The position numbers and the translations under genes are program-made. Below, piece after piece: positions 1-64,000 of a stretch of 64,000 nt of DNA (positions are counted from its first letter, which is position 1; each line of letters opens with the position of its first letter). Below the pieces are notes generated by a model. The model was not told the DNA's origin. It searched no databases and was given only the letters and a program-made list of their open reading frames with translations. The stretch is from positions 1 through 64,000 of the IMG/VR virus record IMGVR_UViG_3300032053_000002; one strand, written 5' to 3'.

Positions 1-324
1 CGTGAATGTCTCCTTTTATTAGTGCAGCGGAAGCTGTTATCTGACCGTTACTCCAAAGAATTAATTGTGCGTTTGAACTAGATATTGAACCGGAACTTAC
101 ACTAAAACCGGCAATATATCCAGAACCAGTTGCTATTATATTTGCAGCGTATAAGTTATTAGCGTGAATGTCTCCTTTTATTAGTGCAGCGGAAGCTGTT
201 ATCTGACCGTTACTCCAAAGAATTAATTGTGCGTTTGAACTAGATATTGAACCGGAACTTACACTAAAACCGGCAATATATCCAGAACCGGTTGCGATTA
301 TATTATTTGCATATAAATTAACCG
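1..324 (-). repeat. 162-bp (54 aa) tandem repeat; further copies at ~3100-3420
   Basis: cgtgaatgtctccttttattagtgcagcggaagctgtt... starts at 1 and again at 163. Confidence 0.9.
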
Positions 325-6300: not shown

Positions 6301-7168
6301 TATAATTTTCTGTTAGAGAATATGTAGGCGCGGTTTCATACACTAAAGTATATGGACTCGCATTAAAATTTTTGGAGCCATAAGTATTAACACCCATTAT
6401 CGTACTAGTATACACTTGTGGATAAAGTCTATAATCTTCCGCAGTTGGTAAATATGGATTTTGTGCAACCGCCGTATATGCATTAGTAATAGATCTAATT
6501 CTAGTTACATACGATTGACTATTTCCATATACAACATCAGGTATTGGAACTGTTAATAATCCACCAATCATTTGATAATTAAATTGAGCCCCCGCCCACA
6601 TTGATATATTATAGTTGGAACCGACCGCTCTACCTATTACAAGGCCTGAACTATAAGTAATTGTTTCTGGACTAGAACTGGTGGAGTATGTTCGGACTAG
6701 ATATGGAGTAAAAAGTTCTTCGGTGATTACTCTAGGAAGTGAATAAAATCTAATCGGCGAAGAATTTCGCAAAGATGGGTTGACCATAATGCTTTTTTGC
6801 CATCTGATATTGGGAATTCCTTGCCATTCAATTGGAACATTTTTAGCTTCACCGACAACAGTTATAAGACCTTCACCATATTCTTCATCGGGATATACAT
6901 AAACGGAAACAAAACGAGACGCTCCTTCAACATAGTCGGGATATTCAGAATAGATTACTTTTCCGTTTTCATTTAAAACTTCCACATGAACTTCGGAATT
7001 AAGTTTTAATAAATCAGAACCATTTATACGAAACGCGGTTTTCCCAGCGGGGAAAATCTCAGGAATGTCAAATATTCTAAAATATCTAGAATTTGAATCA
7101 TTGTCAATTATGTATACAGGTATTCGCTCCAACCCAACATAATCGTTGTGTTTTTTCAAAACGGACAT
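1..7168 (-). CDS. Giant repeat-containing tail fibre/virion structural protein (>2380 aa, truncated by window edge)
   Basis: Not in the ORF track. ATG at 7168 follows GGAG RBS and ATATTTATA motif (MSVLKKHNDYVGLERIPVYII...). The same frame was open wherever I translated it (7168-5000, ~4550-3550, 1-100); I did not check every codon. Gly/Ser/Thr-rich beta-type repeats (VFEKETVNAVGGQLWVANS, RARIGDLSGLSP, NGQITASAALIKGDIHA). Confidence 0.85.
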   Translation of the reverse strand, partial: MSVLKKHNDYVGLERIPVYIIDNDSNSRYFRIFDIPEIFPAGKTAFRINGSDLLKLNSEVHVEVLNENGKVIYSEYPDYVEGASRFVSVYVYPDEEYGEGLITVVGEAKNVPIEWQGIPNIRWQKSIMVNPSLRNSSPIRFYSLPRVITEELFTPYLVRTYSTSSSPETITYSSGLVIGRAVGSNYNISMWAGAQFNYQMIGGLLTVPIPDVVYGNSQSYVTRIRSITNAYTAVAQNPYLPTAEDYRLYPQVYTSTIMGVNTYGSKNFNASPYTLVYETAPTYSLTENYRSFVKATVANMSVFSGDVYSIKLYAKSVGSERDYELIGESVLESKELMIDSESVNTNERYGYFYGQGTIDSFWTASVLSSTSSMTGPSLTHTSEKLLDAMYVTGSSGIRLYRDYYTVYPLQKTNFYKDVEYSLDVKLYAIKKYKRVAITRMIDVPSARLLIFVSGSAFTELPTSMAAGGGFIEFSGNGKRIREINLTDTDNVAERSFGKVSINFIADKDGDGHIRFVIDSGDWHISDVSLRVSQETGFSPDLASFTIPTPSWQRQDTLEFKTEFYTYRGDRATLFATSSEVFYEGGNVYISGEDNLLTGSIFVGNRIDGGIQLTSVGASDGTRASYLKDVLYQGYYRATDGTGPGGFMIWSGSALDDLSTGLYRGIGLELHGGSASAINPSTGRGETHALRFRTDTGRLEITGSIYATDGYFSGGIEANRILVPLGGITGDETASAYYDPNSGNYYRAAITQQGYVHFMSGSIGGWNINSASLSSPGSTLVLSGDGTISSSHFFVSKDGDITASHVLFTGGTITEDVTILGSVTANSIRTPATIAGSPSTRENASSSIDTDGYALFRSASIGGWSISPSTIYSNNLILNSNGTIQTSNYVSDLTGWKITSDFNGYAEFENAKIRGTLRTTVFEKETVNAVGGQLWVANSTVISGSISASSDPSVASFCTWSVENASGWAVGEIALVKKVTDTGFSTEYVRIMSSSRDVDSSTKFNGKLYVQRCYQSNLQWAHPQLVIPGGPPLVHDSGSITGSYEPGQVIVSTGISGSGYIKINANPRDVYTPYIDIIERTGSGVYDVLLRARIGDLSGLSPAYLYGDTSPGHGIYTENGYFSGKVTATTGSFTGVVHAGGMRLGKNIGASSRFPQFVQGTGSWIDGYNHWFDNGYFSVGDVNSGLFWNPGTATLQISGSLNAVVGTIGGWKIAADALTSVNGAVYLSGSTGQIVSTGQITASNALIRGDIHAVNLYANNIIATGSGYIAGFSVSSGSISSSNAQLILWSNGQITASAALIKGDIHANNLYAANIIATGSGIIGGFGISSGSISSSNQQLILWSNGQITASAALIKGDITANSIIATGSGLIGGWRISPTSLSSGSVELNSFNRYIQVSSSVTDYTKMYYTDATNWGLLGVGGNATVFQLGSANKIGGWLFDNTRISASNIIIDSNGSLQTANYVSDLSGWRITSDFNGYAEFENVKIRGTLKTTVFEKETVNAVGGQLWIANSTVLSGSLTASADPTSPTFATWSVDNASGWAVGEIALVKKVSNTGFTTEYVKIVSSSLESDGLTKFNGKLYVSRSYQSNIQWAHTQLVIPGGPPLVHDSGSITGSYEPGQVIVSTGLSGSGYIKLNANPRDTYTPYIDIIERTGSGVYDVRLRARIGDLTGLSPSLLFGDTSPGHGIYTENGYFSGKIVATSGSFTGRVHAGGMLLGKNVGASSRFPQFVQGTGSWIDGYNHWFDNGYFSVGDASSGLSWDPGATTLRITGSLNATVGTIGGFSITPTAISSSNNSLILRGDSGQITASSALIRGDIYANSIIATGSGLIGGWRISPTSLSSGSVELNSFNRYIQVSSSATDYVKMHYTDATNWGIIGVGGGNTSFQLGSTNKIGGWYFDNAQITASNIIINSNGTIQSANYVSNLVGWRITSDFNGFAEFENAKIRGTLRTTVFEKESVNAVGGELWIANSTVLSGSVTSSSNPTNPTFATWSVENASGWAVGEIILVKKVSDTGFSTEYVRVASWSFDSDNSNTFNGKLYVSRSYQSNKVWQHPQLVDSLGIPLVNYTGSVTGSYEPGQVLVSTGISGSGFIKLNANPRDPYAPFMDIIERTGSGVFDVLLKARIGDLKGLSPAYLYGDTSPGYGIYTENGYFSGKVTATTGSFTGVVHAGGMRLGKNVGASSRFPQFIQGSGSWIDGYNHWFDNGYFSVGDANNGMAWNPGISTLQITGSLNATAGTIGGFSISSNAITSANSTLILRGDSGQITASNSLIRGDIHAVNLYANNIIATGSGYIAGFSVSSGSISSSNAQLILWSNGQITASAALIKGDIHANNLYAANIIATGSGYIAGFSVSSGSISSSNAQLILWSNGQITASAALIKGDIH
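440..4540 (-). repeat. Three ~1 kb near-identical modules within the giant tail gene (~4540-3560, ~2815-1820, ~1430-440)
   Basis: Highly similar DNA and protein modules at offsets of ~1725 and ~1386 bp. The three antisense shadow ORFs 1056-1400, 2493-2735 and 4164-4460 are paralogous. Confidence 0.9.
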
Positions 7169-7264
7169 AAAAAAATCTCCAATAATATACATATAAATAT
7201 AAAAAAATAAATGTTTTTATCGCTCTTTTTTATATTTATATAAAGGACAATAAAGGAGAATAAA

Positions 7265-8114: not shown

Positions 8115-11100
8115 TCCATAATAATTTTACTGAAGCCGTTTTCTTTTTGAATTTCCAATGATATATCTACAAGATCTTTTACATAATAAAGATGCGAAAT
8201 CACAATAACAAAATCAAATTGATTTTTGAGATAGTCGAGCATCCGATAAAGATTATTGGCATTATCTGAATCCAGTGAACCGAACCCTTCATCGACCACT
8301 AGAAAATTTGGTCGGGGTAAACTGGTTATACTTAGTAATGCGACTCTCAATGCAACGGACGAAATGAACCGTTCCATTCCGCTAACTAGCTCTATCGGCC
8401 AGATATCCGTACCGCCATACGAAATTTTTGCGAAAATATCTTTTTCCTCGTTATCGACGCTTAAAATAATTCTGAAATCAACTACTTGCGACAGAATATT
8501 ATTTACTTCATTTTCTATTTGTGGAATGACGCTGGAGATCAATTGGAATGGGACTCCATCTCGTTCAACCGATTCCATATAATATTTATACGCATCATAA
8601 TTCTTTTCCAATTCCCGAACATAATCTATTTCTTCGTCCATTTTTCGCTGTTTTTCTTTATTGACTTCTATTTGTGCATTCAAACTCATAACTTCTTGTC
8701 CAACTTCATTGATTCTGGTTTCCACCATTCGCAATTTGCTCTCCCAATCATCTATTTTTGTTTGAACGATAAAGTTTTTTTGGATAATTTGTTTGTTGGT
8801 GTGATATAAAGAAATATTATTTTTAGTCTCTTCTATTTTTTTATTCAATAGTTGAAAATCTTTTTCAGATTGTATTATATTCGACTGAACCAAATTTATT
8901 TTGCTCTCCATATCCAAAAGTTCTTCTTTTAATCTATTGTATTCCGCATATTTTTCTTTGGTTTCTTTTTCAGATGCCAATTTGGTTTCAAAGTTTTTAA
9001 GTTTTTCCTCAAACCCCCGAACAACCAGTTTATCTCGATCAATATCTTCTTTTGTTTTAACTTTGCTTTTTATGAAGTTCTCATTTTCGGTACAACTGTC
9101 GCAAGAAGGATTGAAAACCAATTTTCCGAAATCTCCCAGTTGTTTCAACGCCGCATCTAACTTTATTTTATATTTATCATACGTGTGTTGAGTTTCGTCA
9201 TTACTTCTTTCCATTTCCTGATACATCACATACTTATCAACGATGTTCGAATCAATCATATTTATTTTATTTATCAATCCACTCTTTTCTACTGACAAAG
9301 ATTGCAAAGATAATTTTATATCATTCAATTGCATCTCTTTTTTCGGGAGCAGTTGGATATATTGTTCTAAATCGCTTTCTAATCTTTTAATGTCCGTGAT
9401 AGAAATGTCAATCTTGATCAGATTTTTAGTGAGATTTTTTATTTCCTCATTTATTTGTTTGTATAGTACGTCGCACTCATTTTTTATTCTATTTTTGTTT
9501 TCATATTCTTTTTCCAATCGCGCCAATAAAACTGATATTTCCGCCAAATCCTTTCCAAAATCCCTTTTTTCAAAATCCTGAAGAACCATACTTATTTTTT
9601 TCATTTCGTCGTTCGCGATATTATATAAATCCTGGCACACAAACAAATCTAAGAATCTCATTAGCAAAATCTTCCTATCAACCTGCCGCATGGATATGAA
9701 ATTATTTTTATCGGTTTGAGGCATCAGAGCGGTTAAAGAAAAATCATCAAAGTCGCCCAAATAATTTCGTATAACGATGTTTGTCGAGCTTCGTCTATCA
9801 CTGTTCAGAGATATTTTATCACCGTCGTCTTTCATGTAAAAATTGACATCAACATTTACGTCGCCGTTTTTATTCTTTTTTCCAAGCCGTTTTAATACGA
9901 ACTCTTTATCGTCAATCAAAAAATTCAGCTTTGAACTGAAATATGATTTTTTATTATTCAATACATTTATTGCTTTCCACGCTCTTGGCGACTTATCAAA
10001 TATAGAAAAACACAACGATTCGATAACATTGCTTTTCCCGTATGTATTCGGCCCGAACAATCCAACTATGCCTCTTAATTTCGTAAAATCTATTTTATTA
10101 TGATCCCCATAAGAAAACATATTCGAGAACTCAAAACTTTGCGGTTTCCAGACTATATTACGTTGTATATCCCTTTCGGGTAATTTCAGATTCATTTGTT
10201 CATTTAATTCAAATATACGATTCAGTAAATCTTCTTTAATATTATATTTTTTTTCTAAATATTCTTTAATCAGTTGATTCTGATAATTTATATCTCGTAT
10301 GTCGCCGATATCGATTCGTTTGGATTGATTTGAAGTGGATTGTATTAAATCACCGACTCTCATCTCGATAATTTCTTCTATACATGGGTATTTCTGGCGA
10401 ATCTTGGATATTATTTCGGCAACTTGCGTTACCGATGTATTTCGAATCATCAGACGAATTCTCGCCTTTGAAGGCAAATCACTAATATCTGGCATCGAAT
10501 TGGAGTCAACAATAAGAGTCACGTAGCCATAATCATTTTTAATTTCTATAAATTCTGATTCTCTATTAGGAATATTCCATTTTAGTATGCCGTGCTTTAA
10601 ATCCTCGCCAAAGCTTTGCTGCATTAGCGAACCGCAATATCCAACCGTCTTTTCTTTATTCAAATACTGATGCTTATGAATATCTCCCAGTATAACCATA
10701 TCAAATTCGTCAAAAATCTCCATTTTTATTTTTTCACTGTGAAGGCGAAAACCGGTATCAGATATGGCCTGGTTCACGATTCCGTGATAAACCGCTATTT
10801 TATTATTTCCTAATATTTTATTGGCAGTAATATATTTACTGGGCGAGTCAAAAATTGACATTACACTGAGTTTGATGTCCGCAATTTCATATACATCAGA
10901 ATTTTTCAAATAAAAAAGATTTTTATTATGTATATTTTTTATTACTGGACTAATGACATCCAGTCTAGTGGGATTTGCTAAATTACAGTCGTGGTTACCG
11001 GCGATTACTATGGTTGGAAGAATACCTGACATTTGTTTTAGGAACTCGAAAGTTAAATCAACTTGTTCAGGCGACATTTCCAATTTCGCATGCGCAATAT

Positions 11101-11263
11101 CTCCCGCAATAATTGCGATAGCATTTTGCGTATCTTTTTTTATCACATCGTATAATCGCGCAAATACTTCCCGATACTCTCGATGTCGCCGTAAATTTCG
11201 GATATGAATATCCGCCATGTGAAATACGGTTTCTACTTTATCTAGCCCAACATCTAATCTCAT
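8111..11263 (-). CDS. Fused Mre11/SbcD nuclease - Rad50/SbcC ATPase (gp47-gp46-like)
   Basis: DIH, GD, GNHD, GDIH phosphoesterase motifs; Walker A GPNTYGKS; coiled coil with CDSC zinc hook; signature VSGME; Walker B/D-loop VVDEGFGSLD; ISH. Confidence 0.92.
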   Translation of the reverse strand: MRLDVGLDKVETVFHMADIHIRNLRRHREYREVFARLYDVIKKDTQNAIAIIAGDIAHAKLEMSPEQVDLTFEFLKQMSGILPTIVIAGNHDCNLANPTRLDVISPVIKNIHNKNLFYLKNSDVYEIADIKLSVMSIFDSPSKYITANKILGNNKIAVYHGIVNQAISDTGFRLHSEKIKMEIFDEFDMVILGDIHKHQYLNKEKTVGYCGSLMQQSFGEDLKHGILKWNIPNRESEFIEIKNDYGYVTLIVDSNSMPDISDLPSKARIRLMIRNTSVTQVAEIISKIRQKYPCIEEIIEMRVGDLIQSTSNQSKRIDIGDIRDINYQNQLIKEYLEKKYNIKEDLLNRIFELNEQMNLKLPERDIQRNIVWKPQSFEFSNMFSYGDHNKIDFTKLRGIVGLFGPNTYGKSNVIESLCFSIFDKSPRAWKAINVLNNKKSYFSSKLNFLIDDKEFVLKRLGKKNKNGDVNVDVNFYMKDDGDKISLNSDRRSSTNIVIRNYLGDFDDFSLTALMPQTDKNNFISMRQVDRKILLMRFLDLFVCQDLYNIANDEMKKISMVLQDFEKRDFGKDLAEISVLLARLEKEYENKNRIKNECDVLYKQINEEIKNLTKNLIKIDISITDIKRLESDLEQYIQLLPKKEMQLNDIKLSLQSLSVEKSGLINKINMIDSNIVDKYVMYQEMERSNDETQHTYDKYKIKLDAALKQLGDFGKLVFNPSCDSCTENENFIKSKVKTKEDIDRDKLVVRGFEEKLKNFETKLASEKETKEKYAEYNRLKEELLDMESKINLVQSNIIQSEKDFQLLNKKIEETKNNISLYHTNKQIIQKNFIVQTKIDDWESKLRMVETRINEVGQEVMSLNAQIEVNKEKQRKMDEEIDYVRELEKNYDAYKYYMESVERDGVPFQLISSVIPQIENEVNNILSQVVDFRIILSVDNEEKDIFAKISYGGTDIWPIELVSGMERFISSVALRVALLSITSLPRPNFLVVDEGFGSLDSDNANNLYRMLDYLKNQFDFVIVISHLYYVKDLVDISLEIQKENGFSKIIMD

Positions 11264-11264
11264 A

Positions 11265-12224
11265 CTACCCCAATCCCAACTTAAATTTCATCAAACTTTG
11301 AAAATCTATTTTAACAGAATTATTTTTTATTACTTCATTTATTTTTTCGAATCCGACTATCGATGGATCTTTTTCTCCTAACTTAACAATATAAACATAC
11401 AACCCCTCCGATAATAATTTCTCGGTTATTTTAATCGAATTTTTTATCGCGTCTTTATCCAACGCGATATAAACCGCCGGCGGGTGTTCCATTACTATTT
11501 TTTCATATAACTTATCAGAAACGGTTTTTCCAAAAAGCGGAATGGCGTTCCTTTTTATGGCTATCGCGTCAAATACGCCTTCGCATAATATAATCTCACT
11601 TTGCCAGTTTATGAATAGATCAAACCCAATTACATTTCTCGACGCTGATGGATTTATATATTTTAGTTTAGTGTCTTCAAAAAATGCACGAGCGGTAAAA
11701 TAATTTAATTTTCCACTATCATCAAACGATGGAACTATTATTCTATTTTTATATTTTCCTTCGGCACAAAATCCTATTTGATATTTTAATATATCGTGAA
11801 GAGTTACTCCCCGATTTTTCAAATATAATAATGCGTGTTTTCTTTCGATTATATTGTTTTTCGCCCAAAGCGGAATATATTCTTTTGGCAAGTTGACAAC
11901 AATTGACGTTAATACGTCTTTGGAATCTGAATGGCGTCCAAAACTTTTTTCTCCGAGAATCTCTTTTAATAAACTTATCTGCTCGGGCGACGCATCAAAT
12001 CTTTTGAACAGTGCGTAGAGACTTTTCCCCTTTGTTCCGTGTATATCCTGGCAGATCCAACAGTGCCACGATTGAAAAGTTTTATAGTTCGGATCTAGTT
12101 TTATTATCAGTTTTGGCTTATAGTGATTACATGCCGGGCAGTGAAAAAGGTATTCTCCGCGACCCTGTTTTCTACCATTTCCTAATAAAGATTCTAAAAG
12201 CGATAGTAACCTTGTTTCATCCAT
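11265..12224 (-). CDS. DNA primase (Zn-binding + TOPRIM)
   Basis: CPAC...HCWIC; RIIVP; KYIN; CEGVFDA; DKDA. Confidence 0.9.
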   Translation of the reverse strand: MDETRLLSLLESLLGNGRKQGRGEYLFHCPACNHYKPKLIIKLDPNYKTFQSWHCWICQDIHGTKGKSLYALFKRFDASPEQISLLKEILGEKSFGRHSDSKDVLTSIVVNLPKEYIPLWAKNNIIERKHALLYLKNRGVTLHDILKYQIGFCAEGKYKNRIIVPSFDDSGKLNYFTARAFFEDTKLKYINPSASRNVIGFDLFINWQSEIILCEGVFDAIAIKRNAIPLFGKTVSDKLYEKIVMEHPPAVYIALDKDAIKNSIKITEKLLSEGLYVYIVKLGEKDPSIVGFEKINEVIKNNSVKIDFQSLMKFKLGLG

Positions 12225-34903: not shown

Positions 34904-34932
34904 AATATAACCAAAAGAAACGTTTCAGTCAA
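34904..34932 (-). promoter_or_regulatory. sigma70-type early promoter
   Basis: TTGACT-N17-TATATT. Confidence 0.8.
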
Positions 34933-36755: not shown

Positions 36756-37799
36756 TTATTTTAACAGTAAATGTGGTTGCGCTTCAATTTGCCCAGCGGA
36801 AGTAACTCTTACGAAATCAACTTTTGCGCGAAATTCGTCTAAAGTTCTGGCACCGACATAACTCATGGAAGACTTTAATCCGTCCGTAATAGCCTTTATT
36901 ATTCGTTCCACCTTGCCTTTATAAGCGACAATTTTGCTATTACCTTCGATGTTATCCGTGTTTTCATTTCGATCCATTTTCGCCGATTCCGATGCCGATC
37001 CCTTATATTGTTTATACAATTGCTCGTCAGGAAAGTTCCCTATTCGGATAAACTTCCCAGGGGTTTCCTTTGTTCCAGCAAGAAGTGAACCCAGCATCAC
37101 AAGGTCGGCTCCAGCTCCAATCGCTTTAGCAACATCTCCTGGTGTCCTTATACCGCCATCCGCAATAATTATATTTTTTCCCTGCGTCGCCTCGTAAACG
37201 TCCATTATGGCCGTGAGTTGCGGAATACCGATTCCAGTACGAATGCGAGTTTCGCAAAGAGAACCGTTTCCTTGCCCAACTCTCAGAATATCCACCCCCC
37301 ACTCCAGTTGGTCTGTCGCCGCTTCTTTGGTGGAAATACTACCACCGATAACGATGATGTCTTTTAACTCTTGGCGAAGAGCCTTCATTACGTCTTTCAT
37401 ATGTTTGGAATGCCCATGCGCAATATCAACTATAAAAGTTCTCGCTCCATTCAGATACAATTGTCTAACCCGTTCCAAATAATCACCTGTTGCGCCAACG
37501 GCAAATGGAGTTGCTTCAATTCCCTTATCTCCTATGTATTGTATTTTAAGAGATTGTAGTTGTTCCAATTGCTTATCAATAGGCATAAACCGATGAATAG
37601 TTCCTATTGCTCCCAGTTGATATAAAATTTCAGCCATTTTATATTCTGAAACGGTACTCATTGGCGACGATATTACCGGAACGGAAAGAATTACGTGATC
37701 AGTTACCCACTTTGTTTCTAAAGAGCATTCGCCTCTAGACTCCATATCCGAGTATTTCGGAGCTATTTGCACATCATCGTAAGTCAGACATTCTCTCAT
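36756..37799 (-). CDS. IMP dehydrogenase/GMP reductase family (no CBS domain)
   Basis: LTYDDV; SSPM.TV; DIAHGHS; VG.G.GSLC.TR; [21 protein letters not shown]; EG. Confidence 0.9.
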
Positions 37800-37811
37800 G
37801 CGCCCTTCTTT

Positions 37812-38165
37812 CTAAAATTTTTTATAATCAGGATTATTCATAATAATGTTTTTCCCGAGATCAAGATATAACGTATCTTTACCAGAAAACCTTCTAGTAG
37901 CTGGGAAAAAAATATCCCATACTTTGAGTTGATTAGTTCCGCGTTCCCAATGTCGGCAATAACACCTAATCTCATCATCGCCTTGATAAAATACTAAAAT
38001 ATATTGATAAGTTTCGCCGACCTTATATGTTTCGGCCAGTGGTTTCTTATTCGACAATATTTCAGTTTGAACGGTATTATGAATTCCATAAAATATCAAA
38101 AAAACAAATATCAATGAAATAAAAAATATCCACGGTACACCGGCGTGATTTTGTTTTTGGTTCAT
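37812..38165 (-). CDS. Membrane-anchored hypothetical protein
   Basis: N-terminal TM. Confidence 0.5.
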   Translation of the reverse strand: MNQKQNHAGVPWIFFISLIFVFLIFYGIHNTVQTEILSNKKPLAETYKVGETYQYILVFYQGDDEIRCYCRHWERGTNQLKVWDIFFPATRRFSGKDTLYLDLGKNIIMNNPDYKKF

Positions 38166-38181
38166 TACATCATTTCCTTTC

Positions 38182-38994
38182 TTATTTTATTATAAAATCT
38201 TTAGTGTTTGAAACTTGCACACCCATCGCTACCATCGACTTAATGAAATCGTCTTGAAGTTGTTCGAATCCGCTAACGGGACTCATACCATCTTCCAATA
38301 ATACAAGTTTTTCTGGTGAGATACCATCAAGTAAAAACTCGGATACAATATCCTTTACGGTATTGGCGACGCAATGCGAACCAGCTTCACCGACCACAAG
38401 AACCGAGTCGCAATCCTCCAGCGTTTCGATAAGTTTAATGTTTGTCAGGGTTGATGGGTCGTTCATGTCAGGAACGTCGGCTTTAATCGCTGAATAGTGC
38501 TCAGTGAAAGAATTACTCCCTTTGGTGATATAATTCACGTTTGTCGCATATTTTTGCTCCCACTCTTTTAACGTGTCGAATAGTGGTTGCATAACGGCCT
38601 GCCCATCACTTCCAATCAGACAGTGCGGAGGCCAGATACATAATGGGTAACGTTTGTTCTCTTCCAATGATTTTATGTAGTGCAAAGCCTGTTTGAATGT
38701 ACCTGGAATGAAGGGCAACCAGGTTGCTGCCAATACATCTTCCAATTTAATAATAGTATACGGGAGCGGGTGATTACCATTAACATCCACCCAGAAAATC
38801 GGATGTGCAATATGAACGGTTTGATGCGTATCTAGAGTTACGTGAATATAACGAAGTTTTTCGCCAATCCGTTTAATTAAGTCCGATATTCTTTCTATAT
38901 CCTTTTCTGCATTCTTCACATATAAAACGTTTTTTATCGGGTCGCAAAAATCTACTTGCGGATCGATGATAAGTAAATCAATTTTTTTATTCAT
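38182..38994 (-). CDS. pncA: Nicotinamidase (isochorismatase family)
   Basis: IIDPQVDFC; D.H; WPPHC; KG; YSA; GEAGSHCV; next to pncB. Confidence 0.85.
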   Translation of the reverse strand: MNKKIDLLIIDPQVDFCDPIKNVLYVKNAEKDIERISDLIKRIGEKLRYIHVTLDTHQTVHIAHPIFWVDVNGNHPLPYTIIKLEDVLAATWLPFIPGTFKQALHYIKSLEENKRYPLCIWPPHCLIGSDGQAVMQPLFDTLKEWEQKYATNVNYITKGSNSFTEHYSAIKADVPDMNDPSTLTNIKLIETLEDCDSVLVVGEAGSHCVANTVKDIVSEFLLDGISPEKLVLLEDGMSPVSGFEQLQDDFIKSMVAMGVQVSNTKDFIIK

Positions 38995-38997
38995 AAT

Positions 38998-40161
38998 TTA
39001 TCGTCCTTTAATTTCTTGTAATGCGCGTTTAATCATATCTTTATTTCCCGTATATTTTGTTTTCGAGTCGCTCAACTTTATCGTCGGTATCCATTTACCG
39101 TTTCCATCTGGATCCGCTGCGGTCATTTTGATTACCATATTCAGAGGTTTAACTTCAGGAATATCATTCGTAAGATAAGTGCCGATGCCGTAAGAAGTCT
39201 TGATGCGACCATTAACATATTTTTCTATTTTTTTCACAAAGTCGTAGTTTAGGCCGTCCGAAAATACTATTGTTTTGGAAAGCGGATCGATTCTCAATTT
39301 TTCATAGTGTTTGATTGCTTTATCTGCGAACTCAAACGGCGAACCCGAATCCTGTCGTACACCGTCAAACAATTTTGCGTACAGGGTATCAAATGACCGA
39401 AAGAATTCGTCGGACGTGAACGTATCAGTTAACGCGATTCCGAGATTACCGTGATACGCATCCACCCATCTACCCAATGCAACTCTTGTCGCCATTTTGA
39501 AACCGTATTTAGCGGCGTGAAACATATACCACTCGTGAGCCTGAGTTCCTATCGGAGTTAAATCATATTTGTGCGCAAGACTAACGTTGCTGGTTCCGAC
39601 AAAGTTTTTATTGGGAGAAAATGTACTAACCATCAGGTTTTGATACCAATACGCATAACGTCGGCGTGTTCCAAAGTCGGCGAATTTTATACCAAGTGCT
39701 TTAAACTTTTCGGATTTTTTATTGATAAGTTCCGTAACTTTACCGAATTCACCGGTCATATCAACATTTTTACGAACCATTGCATAATTCAATTCACTAA
39801 TCATCGCCATCAACGGAACTTCCCAGAGAATTGTGCGATACCAGTACCCCTCGATAACTACTTTTAAGTCGCCACCATTCTGAGTTATTTTGACTTCGTT
39901 CGGGTCGTATTTATACCCTTCGAGTAAATCTAAATAAACGGGGTCGAAGAAATAGCACTTATCTCTTAAAAACTCTTTTTCCGACTTTAATAGTGATGGT
40001 ATTTTCCGCAATTCATCTTTTAATTGTGCTCCCAAATACTTTGGAAATCTGTGTTTTCCGCGATTGATAAACTCATATCGAACTTTCGCGTTGGGATATA
40101 ATTTCGCGACAGCTAGTTGCATCGAGAATTTATACAAATCAGAATCGAGAATTGAAATCAT
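38998..40161 (-). CDS. pncB: Nicotinate phosphoribosyltransferase
   Basis: SILDSDLYKFSM; DFGTRRR; GTSNV; GTQAHEW; LTDT; GVRQDSG; VFSDGL; GIGT.LTND; KLSD. Confidence 0.95.
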   Translation of the reverse strand: MISILDSDLYKFSMQLAVAKLYPNAKVRYEFINRGKHRFPKYLGAQLKDELRKIPSLLKSEKEFLRDKCYFFDPVYLDLLEGYKYDPNEVKITQNGGDLKVVIEGYWYRTILWEVPLMAMISELNYAMVRKNVDMTGEFGKVTELINKKSEKFKALGIKFADFGTRRRYAYWYQNLMVSTFSPNKNFVGTSNVSLAHKYDLTPIGTQAHEWYMFHAAKYGFKMATRVALGRWVDAYHGNLGIALTDTFTSDEFFRSFDTLYAKLFDGVRQDSGSPFEFADKAIKHYEKLRIDPLSKTIVFSDGLNYDFVKKIEKYVNGRIKTSYGIGTYLTNDIPEVKPLNMVIKMTAADPDGNGKWIPTIKLSDSKTKYTGNKDMIKRALQEIKGR

Positions 40162-40177
40162 AACTTATCCTATTTAA

Positions 40178-40411
40178 TTAAAATAAAATTTTCATAAAAA
40201 CCGTGACCAAAATAAACCATATAGCAAATGAAAACATCATACCGCATGCCATTAGAAATAATATACTATCCCATTGTTTGCTGGTATGCGCAGAAAAATT
40301 TGTATCCAGTTTTTTATCGATTTCATCACTTTGTTTTTGCCAAAATATAGCCAATCCTGCTCCAGAAAGTATAACAACCAAAACCCAAAGTAATCCTTTA
40401 AGAAAAATCAT
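40178..40411 (-). CDS. Small two-TM membrane protein
   Basis: Hydrophobic segments, GGAG RBS. Confidence 0.5.
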   Translation of the reverse strand: MIFLKGLLWVLVVILSGAGLAIFWQKQSDEIDKKLDTNFSAHTSKQWDSILFLMACGMMFSFAIWFILVTVFMKILF

Positions 40412-40619
40412 AACTTCTCCTATTTTTATTCATAATTCTTTAATATATAATCTATTTCATTTAAAAGTTTTTTCATTTTTCTTTTATATTGGTTTATTTC
40501 ATTTTTGGTGTCTTCTCTACGTATCATTGAACGTAATGTATTAGCATACTTTAAAGCATCAAACGCACAACTATATAAATAATCGTATGCGATTTTTTCA
40601 TTAAGATTTACTGGTAAAC

Positions 40620-41561
40620 TCATTCTATTTCTTCCTTTATCAATTTTCTTCTTGAAATATTATACGGATTATTTCTTTTAAATTCCGATTTTAAATGTCG
40701 CCGAATAACTGAGTGGTCTTCATCTACCTCGCGACCGTGAGTATAATCACTTAAAATTTCATCAACTTCTTCGTATGTCTTTGCTCCCAATTGTTCCAGA
40801 TCAGAGTTTGTTATTCCTAACCCATCAGTCGGAACGGCATCTATACATAACCGCATGGCTTCCGCTTTTTTAAAATCCTGGTTGCATCCAGACGAGTAAT
40901 CATTTAAAAGGTATTTTGATAATGTATACACTTCGGTTTTCCAGAGATTCTGTATCATACCAAAGTCACCCACGTCGCCGTGAAGTGTCCAGAATCCGAG
41001 TAAATACTCGGTATAATTGTCAGTACCCAAAACCATTCCTTTATTAGTATACGCAAGATTATACAGGTAAATCATTCGCAGTCGTGCTTTGATATTTCCC
41101 CTACGTATTTTTTCTTCCATCTCATTCGCCATCAGAACATATTTTTCAGTAACATCCATTTCCACATTAAAAAAAGTAGCGAGCAAATCTGTATTTTCCC
41201 TAAAATCAGTACAAAACGCTTCGCCGGTAGCAATCGCCCTTTTTTGTTCTTCGTCCGTGTTCGTTTCAATCGGCAAACTGCGACCAATCAACGGAATACC
41301 TAAATGTCTGCAAACCGGTTCGGCTATTGCACAACATAACGCACTGTCTATACCGCCAGATACACCGATGATCAGTGATTTTATTTTGTTGGTTACGATA
41401 TAAACATCGAGCATATCCTGAATAGTTTTAATAACCGACGCGGCTTCTTTTTCTGTTATAAATGTCGCCTCTTTTGCTAATACTTTTTCGGTGGCGTCCA
41501 TCACTTCTTTCAATGTTATTCCGATAGTCATTACTTCTCCAATGCTTTTAAAGTTTAACAA
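40620..41561 (-). CDS. nadE: NH3-dependent NAD+ synthetase
   Basis: GVSGGIDSA; GNIKARLRM..LY; GTDN.TE..LGFWTLHGD; KTEVY; PTDGL; no glutaminase domain. Confidence 0.92.
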   Translation of the reverse strand: MLNFKSIGEVMTIGITLKEVMDATEKVLAKEATFITEKEAASVIKTIQDMLDVYIVTNKIKSLIIGVSGGIDSALCCAIAEPVCRHLGIPLIGRSLPIETNTDEEQKRAIATGEAFCTDFRENTDLLATFFNVEMDVTEKYVLMANEMEEKIRRGNIKARLRMIYLYNLAYTNKGMVLGTDNYTEYLLGFWTLHGDVGDFGMIQNLWKTEVYTLSKYLLNDYSSGCNQDFKKAEAMRLCIDAVPTDGLGITNSDLEQLGAKTYEEVDEILSDYTHGREVDEDHSVIRRHLKSEFKRNNPYNISRRKLIKEEIE

Positions 41562-41850
41562 TACTATACATGGCAGCTAAGGTTTTCCATTTATCTATTA
41601 TACGATTTTTTTGAATACAAATTTTCTTGTATTTACTATCAAGTTCTTTTTTTGTAGGAACTTTAATGTATTTATATCCATAAGTAACATAGTTGTCTGA
41701 ATGCTTCCATGCACCGAATTCAGAACACCATTTTTCGAGATGATATTTTATATCTTCTTCAGTAAAATCTTTTGAAATGCGAAATATTCTTTTTTCCTCC
41801 GTTCCACGATTTGATTTAATCCAAAACAAAACATACGTTTTATTTTTCAT
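41548..41850 (-). CDS. Hypothetical protein
   Basis: Coupled ORF in early operon. Confidence 0.5.
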   Translation of the reverse strand: MKNKTYVLFWIKSNRGTEEKRIFRISKDFTEEDIKYHLEKWCSEFGAWKHSDNYVTYGYKYIKVPTKKELDSKYKKICIQKNRIIDKWKTLAAMYSIVKL

Positions 41851-42028
41851 TATTTCTCCAATATATTATTTTTCAAATTTAAATGCCCGTTTTTACATAT
41901 TCGTATATTCTCCGTAGAAGCCCCACAGGTTATTTCTTCTGTAAAATCTCCGCATATTCCACAAAGACAATCCTTGTCTATAACCAAATCATATATTGCG
42001 TTCATTAATATTTTCTTTTCATCTTCTT

Positions 42029-42301
42029 TCATTGCTTCTCCAACGCATCTATCTTTTCAATAAATTCATTAACAAAATGAATATATTTGGGATGCTCAAG
42101 TGCAACTAGAGCGAATGCTTTTTTAACATCGTCTATATATTTTTTAATTGCGCCTTCTAACCGGTTATTGTCGGCTTCTAGATCGCTGATGGTTTCTATA
42201 AAATTCATTATGGTTTCTCCCCGAATATTTTGTACGCTATTCAAGCCGTGTTCGGCGACAACCTTTCTCCATCGTTCAATTTCTTGTTTATCCAATATCA
42301 T
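42029..42301 (-). CDS. Hypothetical protein
   Basis: First gene behind sigma70 promoter; GGAG RBS. Confidence 0.55.
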   Translation of the reverse strand: MILDKQEIERWRKVVAEHGLNSVQNIRGETIMNFIETISDLEADNNRLEGAIKKYIDDVKKAFALVALEHPKYIHFVNEFIEKIDALEKQ

Positions 42302-42330
42302 AACTTCTCCAATATTTTATTTACTATAAT

Positions 42331-42359
42331 AATATACGAAATTATATTCAGAAAGTCAA
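42331..42359 (-). promoter_or_regulatory. sigma70-type early promoter (NAD operon)
   Basis: TTGACT-N17-TATATT. Confidence 0.8.
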
Positions 42360-52814: not shown

Positions 52815-52895
52815 TATCCACGGCAGGATTTGAACCTGCGTTTTCAGCTCCGTACTACGGCTAATGCGTTCGTAGCGCATCCCGGCTACGTGGAC
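52815..52895 (-). tRNA. Non-canonical D-armless tRNA-like RNA, anticodon ACG (Arg), long variable arm
   Basis: GUCCACG/CGUGGAU acceptor; 8-nt UAGCCGGG linker; AUGCG-CUACGAA-CGCAU; 24-nt variable region; GCAGG-UUCAAAU-CCUGC; ends A-CUA. Confidence 0.75.
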
Positions 52896-54395: not shown

Positions 54396-54869
54396 TTATT
54401 TCTTTAATATTTTAGTCGCCAGTTCTACCAGCTTTTCATTAAACCCATCCAACATATTCGTATGTAAAACATTATCAGGAAAAAACGGCCAAATATCGTC
54501 AACATCGTCGTCTAATATCAGAAATGATTTCACGTTTTCCTTATTGTTTTCCAACCATTGTGATATTTCTTTCCCGCGAATATCTTCCCGAGTCTTTGGA
54601 GTGAGCCCAATAACTTCCCAATTAACATTCTTTTTTTCAAATAGTTGTTGAAAATAGTCAATCGTCTTCCCGTATCGCCAACTTGAAGATATTACGATTT
54701 TGGAATCAGTCAAAGAGATAAGTTTATTTAACGCGATAATACAATCATCGTCCAGAGATTGTAAATCCCTTTCATCACTGGATAACTTTTTATCCCGTAA
54801 ATTTTCAATGCTCTTTCTAGTAACGAGAACCCCGTCTAGATCAAGAAAAATAATGTTAAACTTTTCCAT
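54396..54869 (-). CDS. HAD phosphatase (Swiss-army-knife RNA-repair type)
   Basis: IFLDLDGVL; KIVISSSWR; RGKEI..WL; ILDD. Confidence 0.85.
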   Translation of the reverse strand: MEKFNIIFLDLDGVLVTRKSIENLRDKKLSSDERDLQSLDDDCIIALNKLISLTDSKIVISSSWRYGKTIDYFQQLFEKKNVNWEVIGLTPKTREDIRGKEISQWLENNKENVKSFLILDDDVDDIWPFFPDNVLHTNMLDGFNEKLVELATKILKK

Positions 54870-54874
54870 ATACT

Positions 54875-54903
54875 AATATACCACCCCAGAAATTAACAGT
54901 CAA
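54875..54903 (-). promoter_or_regulatory. sigma70-type early promoter
   Basis: TTGACT-N17-TATATT. Confidence 0.8.
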
Positions 54904-54930
54904 CCGAATCTTTAAAGATTGTGAAACCTT

Positions 54931-56919
54931 TCACGAGCGACGACTCTTATTTTTTAACCACTGAAATACCCTGTCCACGTTGATTGATTTTTCAAAAATT
55001 TCTTCTTTATGCCCGATTACAGAATAAACATATTCGTCAATTGTATTTTCGCCCAAAAGATAATAGATATTTACAGGATTTTGTTGACCTATCCTATGCA
55101 ACCTATCTTCCGCTTGTGACAATAACGCCGGTGTCCACGGTAATTCAACAAACGCAATCTTATCGCAAATTCTCTGTAATCCATCGATACCTATTCCGGC
55201 CGATTGCAGCGAACCGATGAAAATCTTTATATCTTTTTCAGCTATGAATCGGTTTATAGTGTCGCTAACTTCATTCGCCATCCCGCCATACAACATCACC
55301 GAACAATTTCTGTATTTATTAAAAAGATTTTCTATTATGTCGCGATGATGAGCGAAAATAACCAACTTATCAACTTGCTCCAAAGTATCGTCAACCCATT
55401 CGAATATCGCGTCCATTTTGTACGTCGCCGTGGCCTGTCGTAAGTATTCTATTTTAACCATTTTTTCTGCGTATTCACTGCGAGTTGTTAGTTTTTCTTC
55501 AATCAACTCTTCTACTTCAATTTCAGATAGATTTTGTTTCTTTAACTTTTCTTCATACCAGTTTATAGAGTCATCTTCTACTTCTTTATATTTTTTGTAA
55601 TCAGATAAAGGCAAATAAACTACCTGTTTTATCTTGTCTGGTAATTCCTTTAACACGTCTTTTTTCATTCGCCGAATCATACAGGATTTTCTTAGTTCGG
55701 TCTGCAACTCTTCTTCATTCGCGGAAGTGTATATCGTTCCGAAACCATTAAATTGCGGCGGTGCATATCTGCGAATAAATCGTCTTTTCCCACCGAAGTG
55801 AGAATCCAAAACACCCAACAATTCCAACTGCGGCGCCAATTCTATTGTTCTATTCAGGATAGGCGTTCCCGTTGTTAAAATGCGATATGAAACATTTTCA
55901 AAATATTTTAATATTGCTATTGTGCGCTGGGAGTTAGATGTTTTCAAATAATGCGACTCATCTGCTATCAAACACTTCGGTTTTCTTATCATAAGTCTGT
56001 CGCCAACTTTGGAAATCATATTGTAACTAACCACGTAAATATCAGAGTTCGGAAAAACGCTGCTGTTGTCTATCTTTGATGCCGTCCGATGTGGAATCCA
56101 ACTTTCTATTTCTCTCAACCAATTTCTCACAATCATGGCCGGAACAACAATTACTGCGGGGTATAATTGGTGATATTCAATAATCGCCAATGCTTGAATT
56201 GTTTTTCCGAGACCCATTTCATCCGCGATTAAAATTCCGTTCCGATGTTTAGAATATTCGACGGCGACTTTCTGAAACGGATATAATCTCTCAAACATTC
56301 CTTTGAATTCATCTGATTCGTTTATAGATTCCATAGTTGACAGTATAAATAATTTTTTTTGTTGACCTACCTCTATTTTAGCTTTATTTATCGCCTTCTC
56401 CATTTTCTTTTCGTCTATGTTATAACCGATCTCTTTAATTAGCGGATTGTTCAGCAGTTCTTCGAAAATGTTTTCATCACGTATTACAGTAAACCATAGC
56501 GGATCAGAATTCTGGCGATATTCGAATTGTAAGTCCAAATCTTCTTTGAAAAATTTAATTAACGGCTCGAACTTGTTTCGCGGAAGCCATGGTAAACGAA
56601 TCTCTAATACGTTGTTATCGCCCATAATTTTTATTTCTATCGCCTGAAAAACCGGTCGACTTTCGCCTCCGCTTTTTTCTTTTTGGTATTCTTCCAACGA
56701 ATAATATTTTATTCCCAGACTTCTGAAATAATCATTGTACTTTATCAAAGAATCGTTTAGTAATTTTATTATTTCGTAATCCTTTATTTTTCCGCGAAGT
56801 AAATGACTAAACAACATCAAATCCGGAGGAGAAATACCTGTTATTTTTCCTTTAGCGGCATAATCCAGGAGCAACTTTACGAATTTTACGATGTAGTGAT
56901 TCTCAAAATTATTTGCCAA
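54931..56919 (-). CDS. SNF2/HARP-like helicase
   Basis: LYPFQ; ADEMGLGKT; DESH; TGTP; RR.K; QAEDRLHRIGQ. Confidence 0.92.
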   Translation of the reverse strand: MANNFENHYIVKFVKLLLDYAAKGKITGISPPDLMLFSHLLRGKIKDYEIIKLLNDSLIKYNDYFRSLGIKYYSLEEYQKEKSGGESRPVFQAIEIKIMGDNNVLEIRLPWLPRNKFEPLIKFFKEDLDLQFEYRQNSDPLWFTVIRDENIFEELLNNPLIKEIGYNIDEKKMEKAINKAKIEVGQQKKLFILSTMESINESDEFKGMFERLYPFQKVAVEYSKHRNGILIADEMGLGKTIQALAIIEYHQLYPAVIVVPAMIVRNWLREIESWIPHRTASKIDNSSVFPNSDIYVVSYNMISKVGDRLMIRKPKCLIADESHYLKTSNSQRTIAILKYFENVSYRILTTGTPILNRTIELAPQLELLGVLDSHFGGKRRFIRRYAPPQFNGFGTIYTSANEEELQTELRKSCMIRRMKKDVLKELPDKIKQVVYLPLSDYKKYKEVEDDSINWYEEKLKKQNLSEIEVEELIEEKLTTRSEYAEKMVKIEYLRQATATYKMDAIFEWVDDTLEQVDKLVIFAHHRDIIENLFNKYRNCSVMLYGGMANEVSDTINRFIAEKDIKIFIGSLQSAGIGIDGLQRICDKIAFVELPWTPALLSQAEDRLHRIGQQNPVNIYYLLGENTIDEYVYSVIGHKEEIFEKSINVDRVFQWLKNKSRRS

Positions 56920-57340
56920 ATGCTTGCTCCAGTATAGGAAGATGCCTATAAAACATTTTTTTCTCGGCTTCTTCTTTGCTCAAAAACCCCGCCCAATCAA
57001 CCTCTTCTTTTTGCAACAAATCACTCACAACAACCGGATATACAAATTCCGCGATTCGCGGATTAGTTATTTCAACTATGAAACAGAAAACTTTTTTATA
57101 CACCTTTCCTTTTTTATCGGTATATTCTATAATAATTGGAACATCGGACTTTATCATACCCCTTGAAAATCGCACACCGATTTCTTCTTCCGTTTCGCGA
57201 ATAGCGGCATCTATCACATCTTCACCGTTCTCTATTTCGCCTTTAGGAATCGAGTACGTCCCATTCCAGGATGCATTAGTCGGGTGGCATAACAAAATCT
57301 TATTATCGTAAATTATCGCGAGCCCGGCAGATTTTTTCAT
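56909..57340 (-). CDS. NUDIX hydrolase
   Basis: PKGEIENGEDVIDAAIRETEEEIG. Confidence 0.92.
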   Translation of the reverse strand: MKKSAGLAIIYDNKILLCHPTNASWNGTYSIPKGEIENGEDVIDAAIRETEEEIGVRFSRGMIKSDVPIIIEYTDKKGKVYKKVFCFIVEITNPRIAEFVYPVVVSDLLQKEEVDWAGFLSKEEAEKKMFYRHLPILEQAFGK

Positions 57341-58107
57341 TCCACTAACTCTCCGTCTTTTTTATAGATTATATTTTTTAGATAGTCGCGATTGTCGGCG
57401 AAAAACGGAACGTCATTATCAAGTACCCACTTTGACCTGAGAACTTTTTGCCCATCTTCGGTAACAATCTCATACATATATTTTTTTACGGTGAATCCCC
57501 ACTTCTGAGCACTGGGTAATTCTTCCCACTTTTCACCTTTACCTTTTAATTCACACATTTCTCTTAACTCGTCAGAATTTTTATTCAGTAATACTTTTTG
57601 ACTAAACATAGAATGCGCAAGAGATTGGATAGAATTTCTCTTTGCGTCAAATTGTCGCCAGATGAAAATGTTTTCCACTTCGTTTAGCGGAACATTAAAT
57701 ACCCGACAATCAAAGTATGCCAGTGAGTTGGGAAGCGCAATCACACTGTTGAAATTGGCAGTAAAAATAGATGCGATTACAGAAGAAACCTTTTGAATAT
57801 TTCCGCCAAACCACACCTGAGACTTTTCTCCACCCCAGACTCCACCACCCATTAAAAATGTCGCTTCATCTGATTGACTATATGCCATAGCGACAGACCC
57901 AATTTCTTTACAAGTTTCAACCGCCGCGATTCCCATTGCAGTAGACAACGCCCAATCAAACGGCCGTTTGAACTCATTTTTTCCAACCCAGGTATGAAAC
58001 GCTTTACCATCCACTCGAACAAAAATCGGAAGGTTCACGTCTAAATAGATTCTACTTTTTTCTTCGTACGCTTTTAGACGGTTTCCCATCTCGTCTTTTT
58101 TCTTCAT
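57337..58107 (-). CDS. tRNA-His guanylyltransferase Thg1-like 3'-5' polymerase
   Basis: RVDGKAFH; YSQSDE; FDCR; WRQ.DA.RNS. Confidence 0.92.
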   Translation of the reverse strand: MKKKDEMGNRLKAYEEKSRIYLDVNLPIFVRVDGKAFHTWVGKNEFKRPFDWALSTAMGIAAVETCKEIGSVAMAYSQSDEATFLMGGGVWGGEKSQVWFGGNIQKVSSVIASIFTANFNSVIALPNSLAYFDCRVFNVPLNEVENIFIWRQFDAKRNSIQSLAHSMFSQKVLLNKNSDELREMCELKGKGEKWEELPSAQKWGFTVKKYMYEIVTEDGQKVLRSKWVLDNDVPFFADNRDYLKNIIYKKDGELVE

Positions 58108-63330: not shown

Positions 63331-64000
63331 TTAGAATTTATCACTAATGAAATCGGACATTATTGTTGGAACGTTTGTATCGAAGCCAACTACATCGAGT
63401 GCGGAAGTATCCATCGGATCCGCTATCGTAAATTCGGTGCTCGTCATTCCGACAACAATAAGTTTCACGTCATGCCCAACTTGGTCTCTGTATTGTTTCA
63501 TTGCTTGAGTTGGATGAATTTTACCTGCCCAAGTTTCGCAATCCGTATAAATAACAATCGCGTCAAAATCCTTTTTGTTATTTTTCGCCCAAATTGCTGG
63601 CAATGCGCAATCAGTTGCTCCAAACGGTAATCCGTTAGTATAATCCGTTATTTCGTTCAAAGACATTCCTGAGTGAACCTTTAACTCGGCGACGTTTGAT
63701 TGCCCAGATAACCAATCTCCTCCAGTGAATCCGATAATAGCGTGATTCTTTTCAGTTCTCATCGTTACCAATGCGAGAGCCGCAGACGCTTCTCTCGGAG
63801 AAAGGTTTAGAATGTTAGCAACACCACCATTAGACATTGAACCGGATACGTCAAGAGCTAACAATATTCTTTTCCCGGTCGGTTCAACATATTTGAACGC
63901 TAAATAAAACGCATCGTTCAGCGCTTTAACAATTTGCGGAACAACATTCCATTGACCAGACCCGCGCATACCGTGACCAGATTCGTAAGTTTTCAGCGCC
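63331..64000 (-). CDS. Ro60/Rsr TROVE-vWA RNA-binding protein (C-terminal part; runs off window)
   Basis: KRILLALDVSGSM; TDCALP; YTDCETWAG.IHP.QA..QYR; KLIVVGMTS..FTIADP.D...LDVVGFD. Confidence 0.92.
   Translation of the reverse strand, partial: ALKTYESGHGMRGSGQWNVVPQIVKALNDAFYLAFKYVEPTGKRILLALDVSGSMSNGGVANILNLSPREASAALALVTMRTEKNHAIIGFTGGDWLSGQSNVAELKVHSGMSLNEITDYTNGLPFGATDCALPAIWAKNNKKDFDAIVIYTDCETWAGKIHPTQAMKQYRDQVGHDVKLIVVGMTSTEFTIADPMDTSALDVVGFDTNVPTIMSDFISDKF

Follow-up and report, generated by a model that had tools for sequence, protein, structure and literature searches.

A PncA-PncB-NadE gene block on a jumbo phage contig as a candidate deamidating nicotinamide salvage module

Gene block and promoter class

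The window analysed here comprises the first 64 kb (64,000 nucleotides) of the 292,723-bp Joint Genome Institute (JGI) contig Ga0315284_10000017, which is the IMG/VR record IMGVR_UViG_3300032053_000002 and originates from sediment metagenomes; the coordinates of window and contig coincide. Between positions 36756 and 42359 it carries a block of genes for the NAD(+) synthase NadE, the nicotinate phosphoribosyltransferase PncB and a PncA-like protein, which we consider a probable phage-borne module for the salvage of nicotinamide by the deamidating route. A preliminary description of the sequence had placed nadE, pncB and pncA co-oriented behind one sigma70-like promoter, with a gene of the IMP dehydrogenase/GMP reductase (IMPDH/GMPR) family downstream. 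This arrangement was confirmed, on the minus strand and with tight spacing. The features of the block and of its downstream flank are given below (ORF, open reading frame; aa, amino acids; tmRNA, transfer-messenger RNA).

42331-42359, minus strand: promoter p42359 (TTGACT-N17-TATATT), which heads the gene block
42029-42301, minus strand: 90-aa ORF, the first gene past the promoter, called by JGI, without significant family match
41850-42032, minus strand: 60-aa ORF without assigned function
41548-41850, minus strand: 100-aa ORF with a weak match to phrog_79 (E 0.0019)
40620-41531, minus strand: NadE, 303 aa from the JGI start, or 313 aa with the TTG at 41561 as start
40426-40623, minus strand: 65-aa ORF, overlapping the NadE stop codon by 4 nt
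40178-40411, minus strand: 77-aa ORF without assigned function
38998-40161, minus strand: PncB, 387 aa
38182-38994, minus strand: PncA-like protein, a probable nicotinamidase of the long form, 270 aa, starting 3 nt past the end of PncB
37812-38165, minus strand: 117-aa ORF without assigned function
36756-37799, minus strand: enzyme of the IMPDH/GMPR family lacking the CBS domain, 347 aa
36138-36489, minus strand: tmRNA with the tag peptide GNYSLAYAA, 266 nt past the IMPDH-like gene
34904-34932, minus strand: the following promoter-motif copy, by which a new transcription unit begins at the latest

All the named genes are present and intact on the minus strand. From 42301 down to 36756, successive genes lie at most 17 nt apart or overlap, and a search of the coding strand of the block revealed no terminator-like site. 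The five small ORFs that precede PncB (90, 60, 100, 65 and 77 aa) have no assigned function; neither these nor the tmRNA downstream of the IMPDH-like gene had been listed in the preliminary description. The tmRNA was called by ARAGORN and matched Rfam RF00023 with 140.9 bits (cut-off 47).

A scan with a generic sigma70 consensus gave no excess of sites (27, with 28.3 expected by chance). The exact sequence TTGACT-N17-TATATT occurs six times in the window, every copy being intergenic and on the coding strand. With at most one mismatch there are eight sites in the window, where 1.15 ± 1.09 are expected, and 100 shuffled sequences never gave as many as eight. We then counted a relaxed form, TTGAC[TA]-N17-TAT[AC]TT, over 206 kb of the contig assembled from overlapping loci (1-206.4 kb of 292.7 kb, ∼70%, are covered in this study, with tables of protein families reaching to 168.8 kb), and observed 31 copies, every one of them on the minus strand. 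The -35 hexamers of the sites in the window start at 34932, 42359, 46290, 51017, 53167, 54903 and 58555, and the last site in these 206 kb is at 143990. The sites thus span 34.9-144 kb with a spacing of ∼3.5 kb; none lies in the region of the SbcCD, primase and baseplate genes (1-34.9 kb) or in 144-206 kb, which includes the part of the sugar-modification cluster beyond 144 kb. The copies also have in common an A-rich block and a CGG ahead of the -35 element.

This strand-biased, intergenic recurrence indicates that the motif is a real one, and we therefore concluded that TTGACT-17-TATATT is a genuine sigma70-like promoter class of the phage. As the next downstream copy is at 34932, the unit starting from p42359 can include the NAD genes as well as the IMPDH-like gene and the tmRNA. 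The tight packing of the genes downstream of a single sigma70-like promoter copy makes their co-transcription by the host RNA polymerase probable. The earlier label of this class as early is unsupported, though other large phages offer a sensible analogy for it.

Enzymes encoded in the block

NadE matched PF02540 (E 1.9e-34) as its only domain and scored 130.8 bits on TIGR00552 (cut-off 63.65). It has no glutaminase domain and is hence of the NH3-dependent, single-domain type, and its ATP loop, SGGIDS (SGGxDS), aligns to that of NadE proteins in the PDB. The nearest homologues are NAD(+) synthases of ∼270 aa with 52-60% identity, the named ones coming mostly from Bacteroidota. Strain variants of the gene are present in three other sediment samples, where 18 of the 23 listed variable sites are third codon positions, as expected under purifying selection; a small patch at 41118-41135 is rich in indels across these variants.

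We also considered whether this NadE could act on nicotinic acid mononucleotide (NaMN), in the manner of a Francisella-type synthetase of nicotinamide mononucleotide (NMN), which would bypass NadD and require an NMN adenylyltransferase instead. The best solved relative of the protein is 3fiu (71.7 bits, 60.1 for the next), which we take to be the Francisella NadE reported to prefer NaMN, and the part of the contig that was read yielded no phage NadD. The margin of 3fiu is small, however, the nearest homologues at 52-60% identity are standard NAD(+) synthases, and NadM and NadR were likewise not found in the searches to 206 kb. We regard this substrate preference as very improbable.

PncB carries both domains of the nicotinate phosphoribosyltransferase family (PF17767 and PF04095) in a full-length match, and passes the curated NCBIfam cut-offs of TIGR01514 (395.9 against 269.55) and NF003704 (434.5 against 379). 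Its homologues were found in 24 other IMG/VR contigs and 14 phage records.

The PncA-like protein stays below the cut-offs of its families (PF00857, 23.1 bits against 27; PRK11609, 30.2 against 174) and was therefore assessed separately by profile, fold and residues. It belongs to a family of ∼267-aa proteins with 3,399 homology matches. In an alignment of 26 members, the predicted triad D11/K158/C208 and the predicted metal ligands D55, H57 and H124 are invariant. The profile of this alignment matched nine PDB sequences, nearly all annotated as nicotinamidases. The triad motifs align with DxQxDF, KG and GxAxxxC of yeast Pnc1 (2h0r), and the metal-site motifs TLDTH (D55, H57) and WPPHC (H124) with TRDWH and WPVHC of the same enzyme; in Pnc1 the corresponding residues have catalytic and metal-binding roles. 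An AlphaFold2 model of the protein (pLDDT 88.7) retrieved only nicotinamidases at ranks 1-12 of a Foldseek search of the PDB (E 2e-13 to 3e-9).

We surveyed the neighbourhood of such long PncA genes at 79 loci from other IMG/VR contigs (L123-L201; L numbers denote the loci of this study) and 80 loci from bacterial genomes (L042-L121). In bacteria, long PncA adjoins the NAD regulator NrtR at 23 of the 80 loci and has PncB within 10 kb at 18, including NrtR-PncA-PncB(-NadE) arrays. Fold, residues and bacterial context led us to accept that the 270-aa protein, a divergent long form, is probably a nicotinamidase, on the basis of its sequence and predicted structure.

The same survey revealed a more frequent partner. 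In IMG/VR, a small vWA gene accompanies long PncA in 74 of the 79 contigs, and PncB in 17 of the 79. The vWA protein (∼247 aa) has an intact MIDAS motif, and its gene is usually immediately downstream of long PncA in phages (for example L152, 9998-10798 for PncA and 10851-11606 for vWA). At the bacterial loci it is present in 44 of 80, immediately downstream on the same strand in 37, and NrtR is often upstream. We found no paper on this pair in the literature. As vWA predominates over PncB, the core role of long PncA may be other than feeding PncB, and this is our chief ground for some doubt about the physiological role of the family.

The protein might accordingly not be primarily a nicotinamidase and be part of a PncA-like/vWA module that merely landed beside PncB. 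The frequency and adjacency of the MIDAS-intact partner, both in IMG/VR and in bacteria, favour such a module, as do the scores under the family cut-offs. The invariant triad and metal ligands aligning to Pnc1, the structural matches, of which the best are all nicotinamidases, and the adjacency of NrtR and PncB in bacteria, which links the family to NAD metabolism, argue for the nicotinamidase. Moreover, the phage studied here is among the few that have no adjacent vWA gene, and its PncA starts 3 nt past the end of PncB. We therefore consider the module explanation improbable for this locus.

These families, the predicted fold and the conserved residues support the earlier proposal that PncA, PncB and NadE are enzymes of deamidating nicotinamide salvage. 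The product of 36756-37799 matched PF00478 (E 4.9e-95), has no CBS domain and reached no equivalog cut-off of NCBIfam. Its best PDB match is 3r2g, and its homologues (337-403 aa) are automatically named IMP dehydrogenase; from its sequence it is assigned at the family level, as a putative IMP dehydrogenase or GMP reductase.

Viral origin, pathway steps and recurrence

The DNA is that of a jumbo phage and not cellular, as had been assumed in the preliminary description. The contig is an IMG/VR viral genome, and all the genes in 8-64 kb of the window are on the minus strand. Genes for gp25 and the baseplate wedge lie on the same strand as the NAD block, 7-24 kb away, and three homing-endonuclease-like genes (NUMOD3/GIY-YIG) are also in the window. 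Near-identical sequence or strain variants are present in at least five samples. The length of the contig exceeds the 200 kb that characterizes the 'NAD-jumbo phages' of Li et al. (2024). Other recognizable genes of the window encode an SbcCD-like fusion and a primase, a Dam methylase, a peptide deformylase, ClpP, Thg1-like, NUDIX, SNF2 and TerC proteins, and the start of a Ro60 protein.

As close cellular relatives exist for all three NAD enzymes, we asked if the block could be cellular DNA or an assembly chimera. The best cellular homologues are, however, at most ∼60% identical, the phage promoter motif is found on either side of the block, and the baseplate genes are on the same strand within 7-24 kb of it. 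An independent 9.3-kb Logan contig has an identical gene order, and strain variants occur in the three other samples. Because of the status of the 292.7-kb contig as an IMG/VR viral genome, the baseplate genes, the Logan contig and the strain variants, we rejected this origin, to which we give practically no chance. In a megablast search of the NAD region against 50,697 phage records no match was obtained, the relatives being found at the protein level only.

The preliminary description had noted that a NadD/NadM step and a source of phosphoribosyl pyrophosphate (PRPP) were not visible in the window, and this was borne out. Pfam scans of the window and the precomputed Pfam tables for 51.5-168.8 kb contained no nicotinamide/nicotinate mononucleotide adenylyltransferase (NMNAT; CTP_transf_like), PRPP synthetase (Prs), nicotinamide phosphoribosyltransferase (NAMPT) or PnuC. 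For the wider genome, we used a NadD hidden Markov model (HMM; A5) built from phage NadD genes and confirmed against NadD in the PDB (E 3e-43), a NadR-like search and a scan for the HxGH motif, and found no adenylyltransferase in 1-206 kb. A motif scan for NadD over all of IMG/VR gave 51 loci, the contig studied here not being among them; the stretch 206-293 kb was covered by this narrow scan, with no match. The search of the wider genome, proposed earlier, thus yielded no NadD, NadM or NadR in 1-206 kb and no Prs up to 168.8 kb. Two upstream ORFs without Pfam matches (191 and 235 aa) were tried as hidden adenylyltransferases and rejected, as they resemble a methyltransferase and a nuclease.

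Since NadD, NadR and NadM are absent from the part of the phage genome that was read, host NadD is presumably needed, so that the phage would supply three of the four steps and depend on its host for the remaining one. NadD is essential in most bacteria.

The gene set recurs in other phages. Among the 24 other IMG/VR contigs with a PncB homologue, NadE lies within 10 kb of it in 12-14, and the same contigs have long PncA in four cases and a canonical 217-aa protein of the isochorismatase family in seven. The 79 long-PncA contigs carry NadE in 11 cases, PncB and NadE together in 10, and NadD nearby in 12. The co-occurrence survey suggested earlier was thereby answered: the PncA-PncB-NadE trio is found in ∼14 other IMG/VR contigs, and PncA, PncB, NadD and NadE, covering all four steps, occur together in at least four (L125/L126, L150, L176 and L187). 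The recurrence of the trio and the quartet therefore makes the deamidating route a recurrent feature of large phages. Separately, a 287-aa radical-SAM gene is immediately upstream of PncB in nine IMG/VR contigs (L003-L007, L011, L012, L016 and L024; for example L012, 9103-9966); it is not present in the phage studied here.

Several other observations were made on the contig. The NUDIX gene at 56909, which had been proposed to recycle ADP-ribose (ADPR), matched neither the ADPR-pyrophosphatase nor any other equivalog family and belongs to another promoter unit, which also contains the Thg1-like and SNF2 genes; the proposal is thus unsupported. The grouping at 54396-58107 (minus strand) of a Thg1-like tRNA-His guanylyltransferase, this NUDIX protein, the SNF2 helicase and a HAD_SAK_2 phosphatase of RNA-repair type, along with an Rnl1 RNA ligase, an HD protein and an HD/AAA_33 protein at contig ∼96-99 kb, suggests a theme of RNA and tRNA repair. 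A tRNA at 52815-52895 (minus strand) was detected by Rfam (37.4 bits) and not called by ARAGORN. At contig ∼66-82.7 kb (L032, 1-16504) there are 27 tRNA genes, one with the anticodon CUA (amber-suppressor type) and one called with a 4-base anticodon; the genes of the window read through normally with genetic code 11.

At one end of the window, a giant repetitive open frame (2-7216, minus strand; more than 2,405 codons) with internal repeated segments runs off the contig start. At the other, an orthologue of Ro60 (TROVE and vWA, 562 aa) spans 63331-64000 on the minus strand and continues to contig ∼65.0 kb. After it follow ∼2 kb without called genes (L032, 15100-17083), containing a tRNA-Met and a sub-threshold manA-like RNA (34.3 bits against 55.2); Y-RNA-like partners might be encoded in this stretch. 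Contig 138-178 kb (L039-L041, L253) contains a large cluster for the modification of sugar nucleotides, with several epimerases/dehydratases, a DegT aminotransferase, a carbamoyltransferase, glycosyltransferases, a B12-radical SAM protein and methyltransferases.

Proposed function and published systems

The explanation that we prefer, with a probability of roughly 0.6, is that the block is a phage-borne module for nicotinamide salvage by the deamidating route (PncA followed by the Preiss-Handler pathway) that uses host NadD. The long-form PncA would hydrolyse nicotinamide to nicotinate, which PncB would convert with PRPP (and ATP) to NaMN. Host NadD would then adenylate NaMN to nicotinic acid adenine dinucleotide (NaAD), from which phage NadE would form NAD+ with ammonia and ATP. 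The host RNA polymerase would transcribe the NAD genes along with the IMPDH-family enzyme and the tmRNA, and, as the net effect, infected cells would restore NAD+ from nicotinamide more rapidly. This NAD+ could feed the NAD(P)-dependent enzymes of the phage and weaken defences in which NAD+ is cleaved to nicotinamide and ADPR.

Several points weigh against this salvage module. The PncA-like protein misses its family cut-offs and is accompanied by vWA much more often than by PncB. In the part of the contig that was read the phage does not encode the whole pathway, since neither NadD/NMNAT in 1-206 kb nor a PRPP synthetase up to 168.8 kb was found. In addition, a four-step route that costs three ATP may be too slow against an NADase.

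The purpose of the salvaged NAD+ can be seen in two ways. The first is plain auxiliary metabolism, in which a larger NAD+ pool would serve the NAD(P)-dependent enzymes of the phage and a prolonged infection, and would have nothing to do with immunity. Such a supply for phage metabolism is what Li et al. (2024) propose for their 'NAD-jumbo phages' (PMC11662467), and the jumbo phage PA5oct raises the expression of the pncA-pncB1-nadE operon of its host, P. aeruginosa (PA4918-4920; PMC7318152). It is also consistent with the adjacent IMPDH-family gene and with at least six genes for NAD(P)-dependent sugar epimerases/dehydratases at 138-169 kb. However, epimerases hold NAD+ as a cofactor that is not consumed, so the demand may be small, and the entry of the pathway at nicotinamide, rather than at nicotinate alone, is left unexplained. 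We consider a purely metabolic role quite possible, though short of an even bet; it is compatible with a role in counter-defence and does not exclude it.

The second is a dedicated counter-defence, in which NAD+ would be rebuilt from the nicotinamide released by the NADases of Thoeris, DSR, SIR2-HerA and SEFIR systems, making the block effectively a fourth NAD+ reconstitution pathway (NARP) by analogy with the published ones. NARP1-3 show that phages counter NAD+ depletion by resynthesis (PMC13464706; bioRxiv 10.1101/2024.02.11.579819). The substrate of PncA is exactly the product of these NADases, and the promoter that heads the block is of the class prevailing in the region of small accessory genes. 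The contig has other genes of anti-defence type, namely S-AdoMet lyase-like genes and one for a NADAR-domain protein at ∼105.5-105.9 kb (L035, 6281-6751; TIGR02464, 90.7 bits, and a weak match to a NADAR anti-phage model). On the other hand, the literature yields no experiment on any phage Preiss-Handler set, the route requires host NadD, PRPP and three ATP and would leave ADPR unused, and the same genes form an ordinary housekeeping operon in bacteria (PMC7318152). A dedicated counter-defence is in our view tenable and somewhat doubtful. NAD+ supply fits the data as well as counter-defence does.

Extending this further, the PncA-PncB-NadE blocks of large phages might constitute a fourth, deamidating reconstitution pathway that hijacks host NadD against Thoeris, DSR, SIR2-HerA and SEFIR, the pair of long PncA and vWA being a related piece of the same conflict. 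We regard this generalization as speculative and rather unlikely. NAD+ depletion is among the commonest anti-phage strategies of bacteria, and the three validated phage answers to it are all amidated. If a deamidating countermeasure did exist, phages could exploit the essential NadD of the host, and nicotinamidase would become an enzyme of conflict. The locus is a compact, promoter-defined example that is directly clonable.

The preliminary description had presented the deamidating pathway as a third route beside two amidated ones, a claim of novelty that does not hold. Preiss-Handler jumbo phages are already in the literature (PMC11662467), and a third validated pathway, the amidated NARP3 (PnuC and NadR), has been described (PMC13464706). 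NARP1 (Adps and Namat) and NARP2 (Nampt and Nmnat) are validated systems of amidated NAD+ resynthesis (bioRxiv 10.1101/2024.02.11.579819). The survey of Iyer et al. (2022) lists only NadV, NadM and NadR as viral NAD genes, and we found no paper in which a phage PncA/PncB/NadE set was tested against a defence system.

NARP2, of the NadV/NatV type of Vibrio phage KVP40, is phage-encoded like the present block, and in both nicotinamide and PRPP would enter and NAD+ would result. NARP2, however, is a validated two-step amidated route via NMN and is complete on the phage, whereas the present route, as predicted from sequence, would take four steps via nicotinate with three phage enzymes. NARP1 and NARP3 have in common with it the aim of restoring NAD+ by the phage; NARP1 reuses ADPR, NARP3 imports nicotinamide riboside, and neither has nicotinate intermediates. 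None of the signature enzymes of NARP1, NARP2 or NARP3 was found in the window or in the Pfam tables to 168.8 kb.

Bacterial pncA-pncB(-nadE) operons (PA4918-4920, and those of Andreprevotia and Sulfuricella, L103 and L104) contain the same three enzymes, with nadD elsewhere. The PncA in the NrtR-PncA-PncB-NadE arrays of L103 and L104 belongs to the same long-form family as that of the phage. In the phage, by contrast, the order is reversed (nadE, pncB, pncA), NrtR is absent and the promoter is of the phage.

The closest comparison is with the 174 'NAD-jumbo phages' of Li et al. (2024, Microbiome), which have salvage or Preiss-Handler pathways and are known from sequence evidence (PMC11662467). 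The present phage is like them in its genome of more than 200 kb, its clustered pncB and nadE, its deamidated route and the kind of evidence available. One of them, Kuafu_71, has a pncB-nadD-nadE cluster (PMC11662467). The block described here comes from sediment and not from the gut, has pncA in the place of nadD, so that it would start from nicotinamide and lack the adenylyltransferase step, and is interleaved with five small ORFs and followed by the IMPDH-family gene and the tmRNA. It adds a further case to a gene set that jumbo phages are already known to carry.

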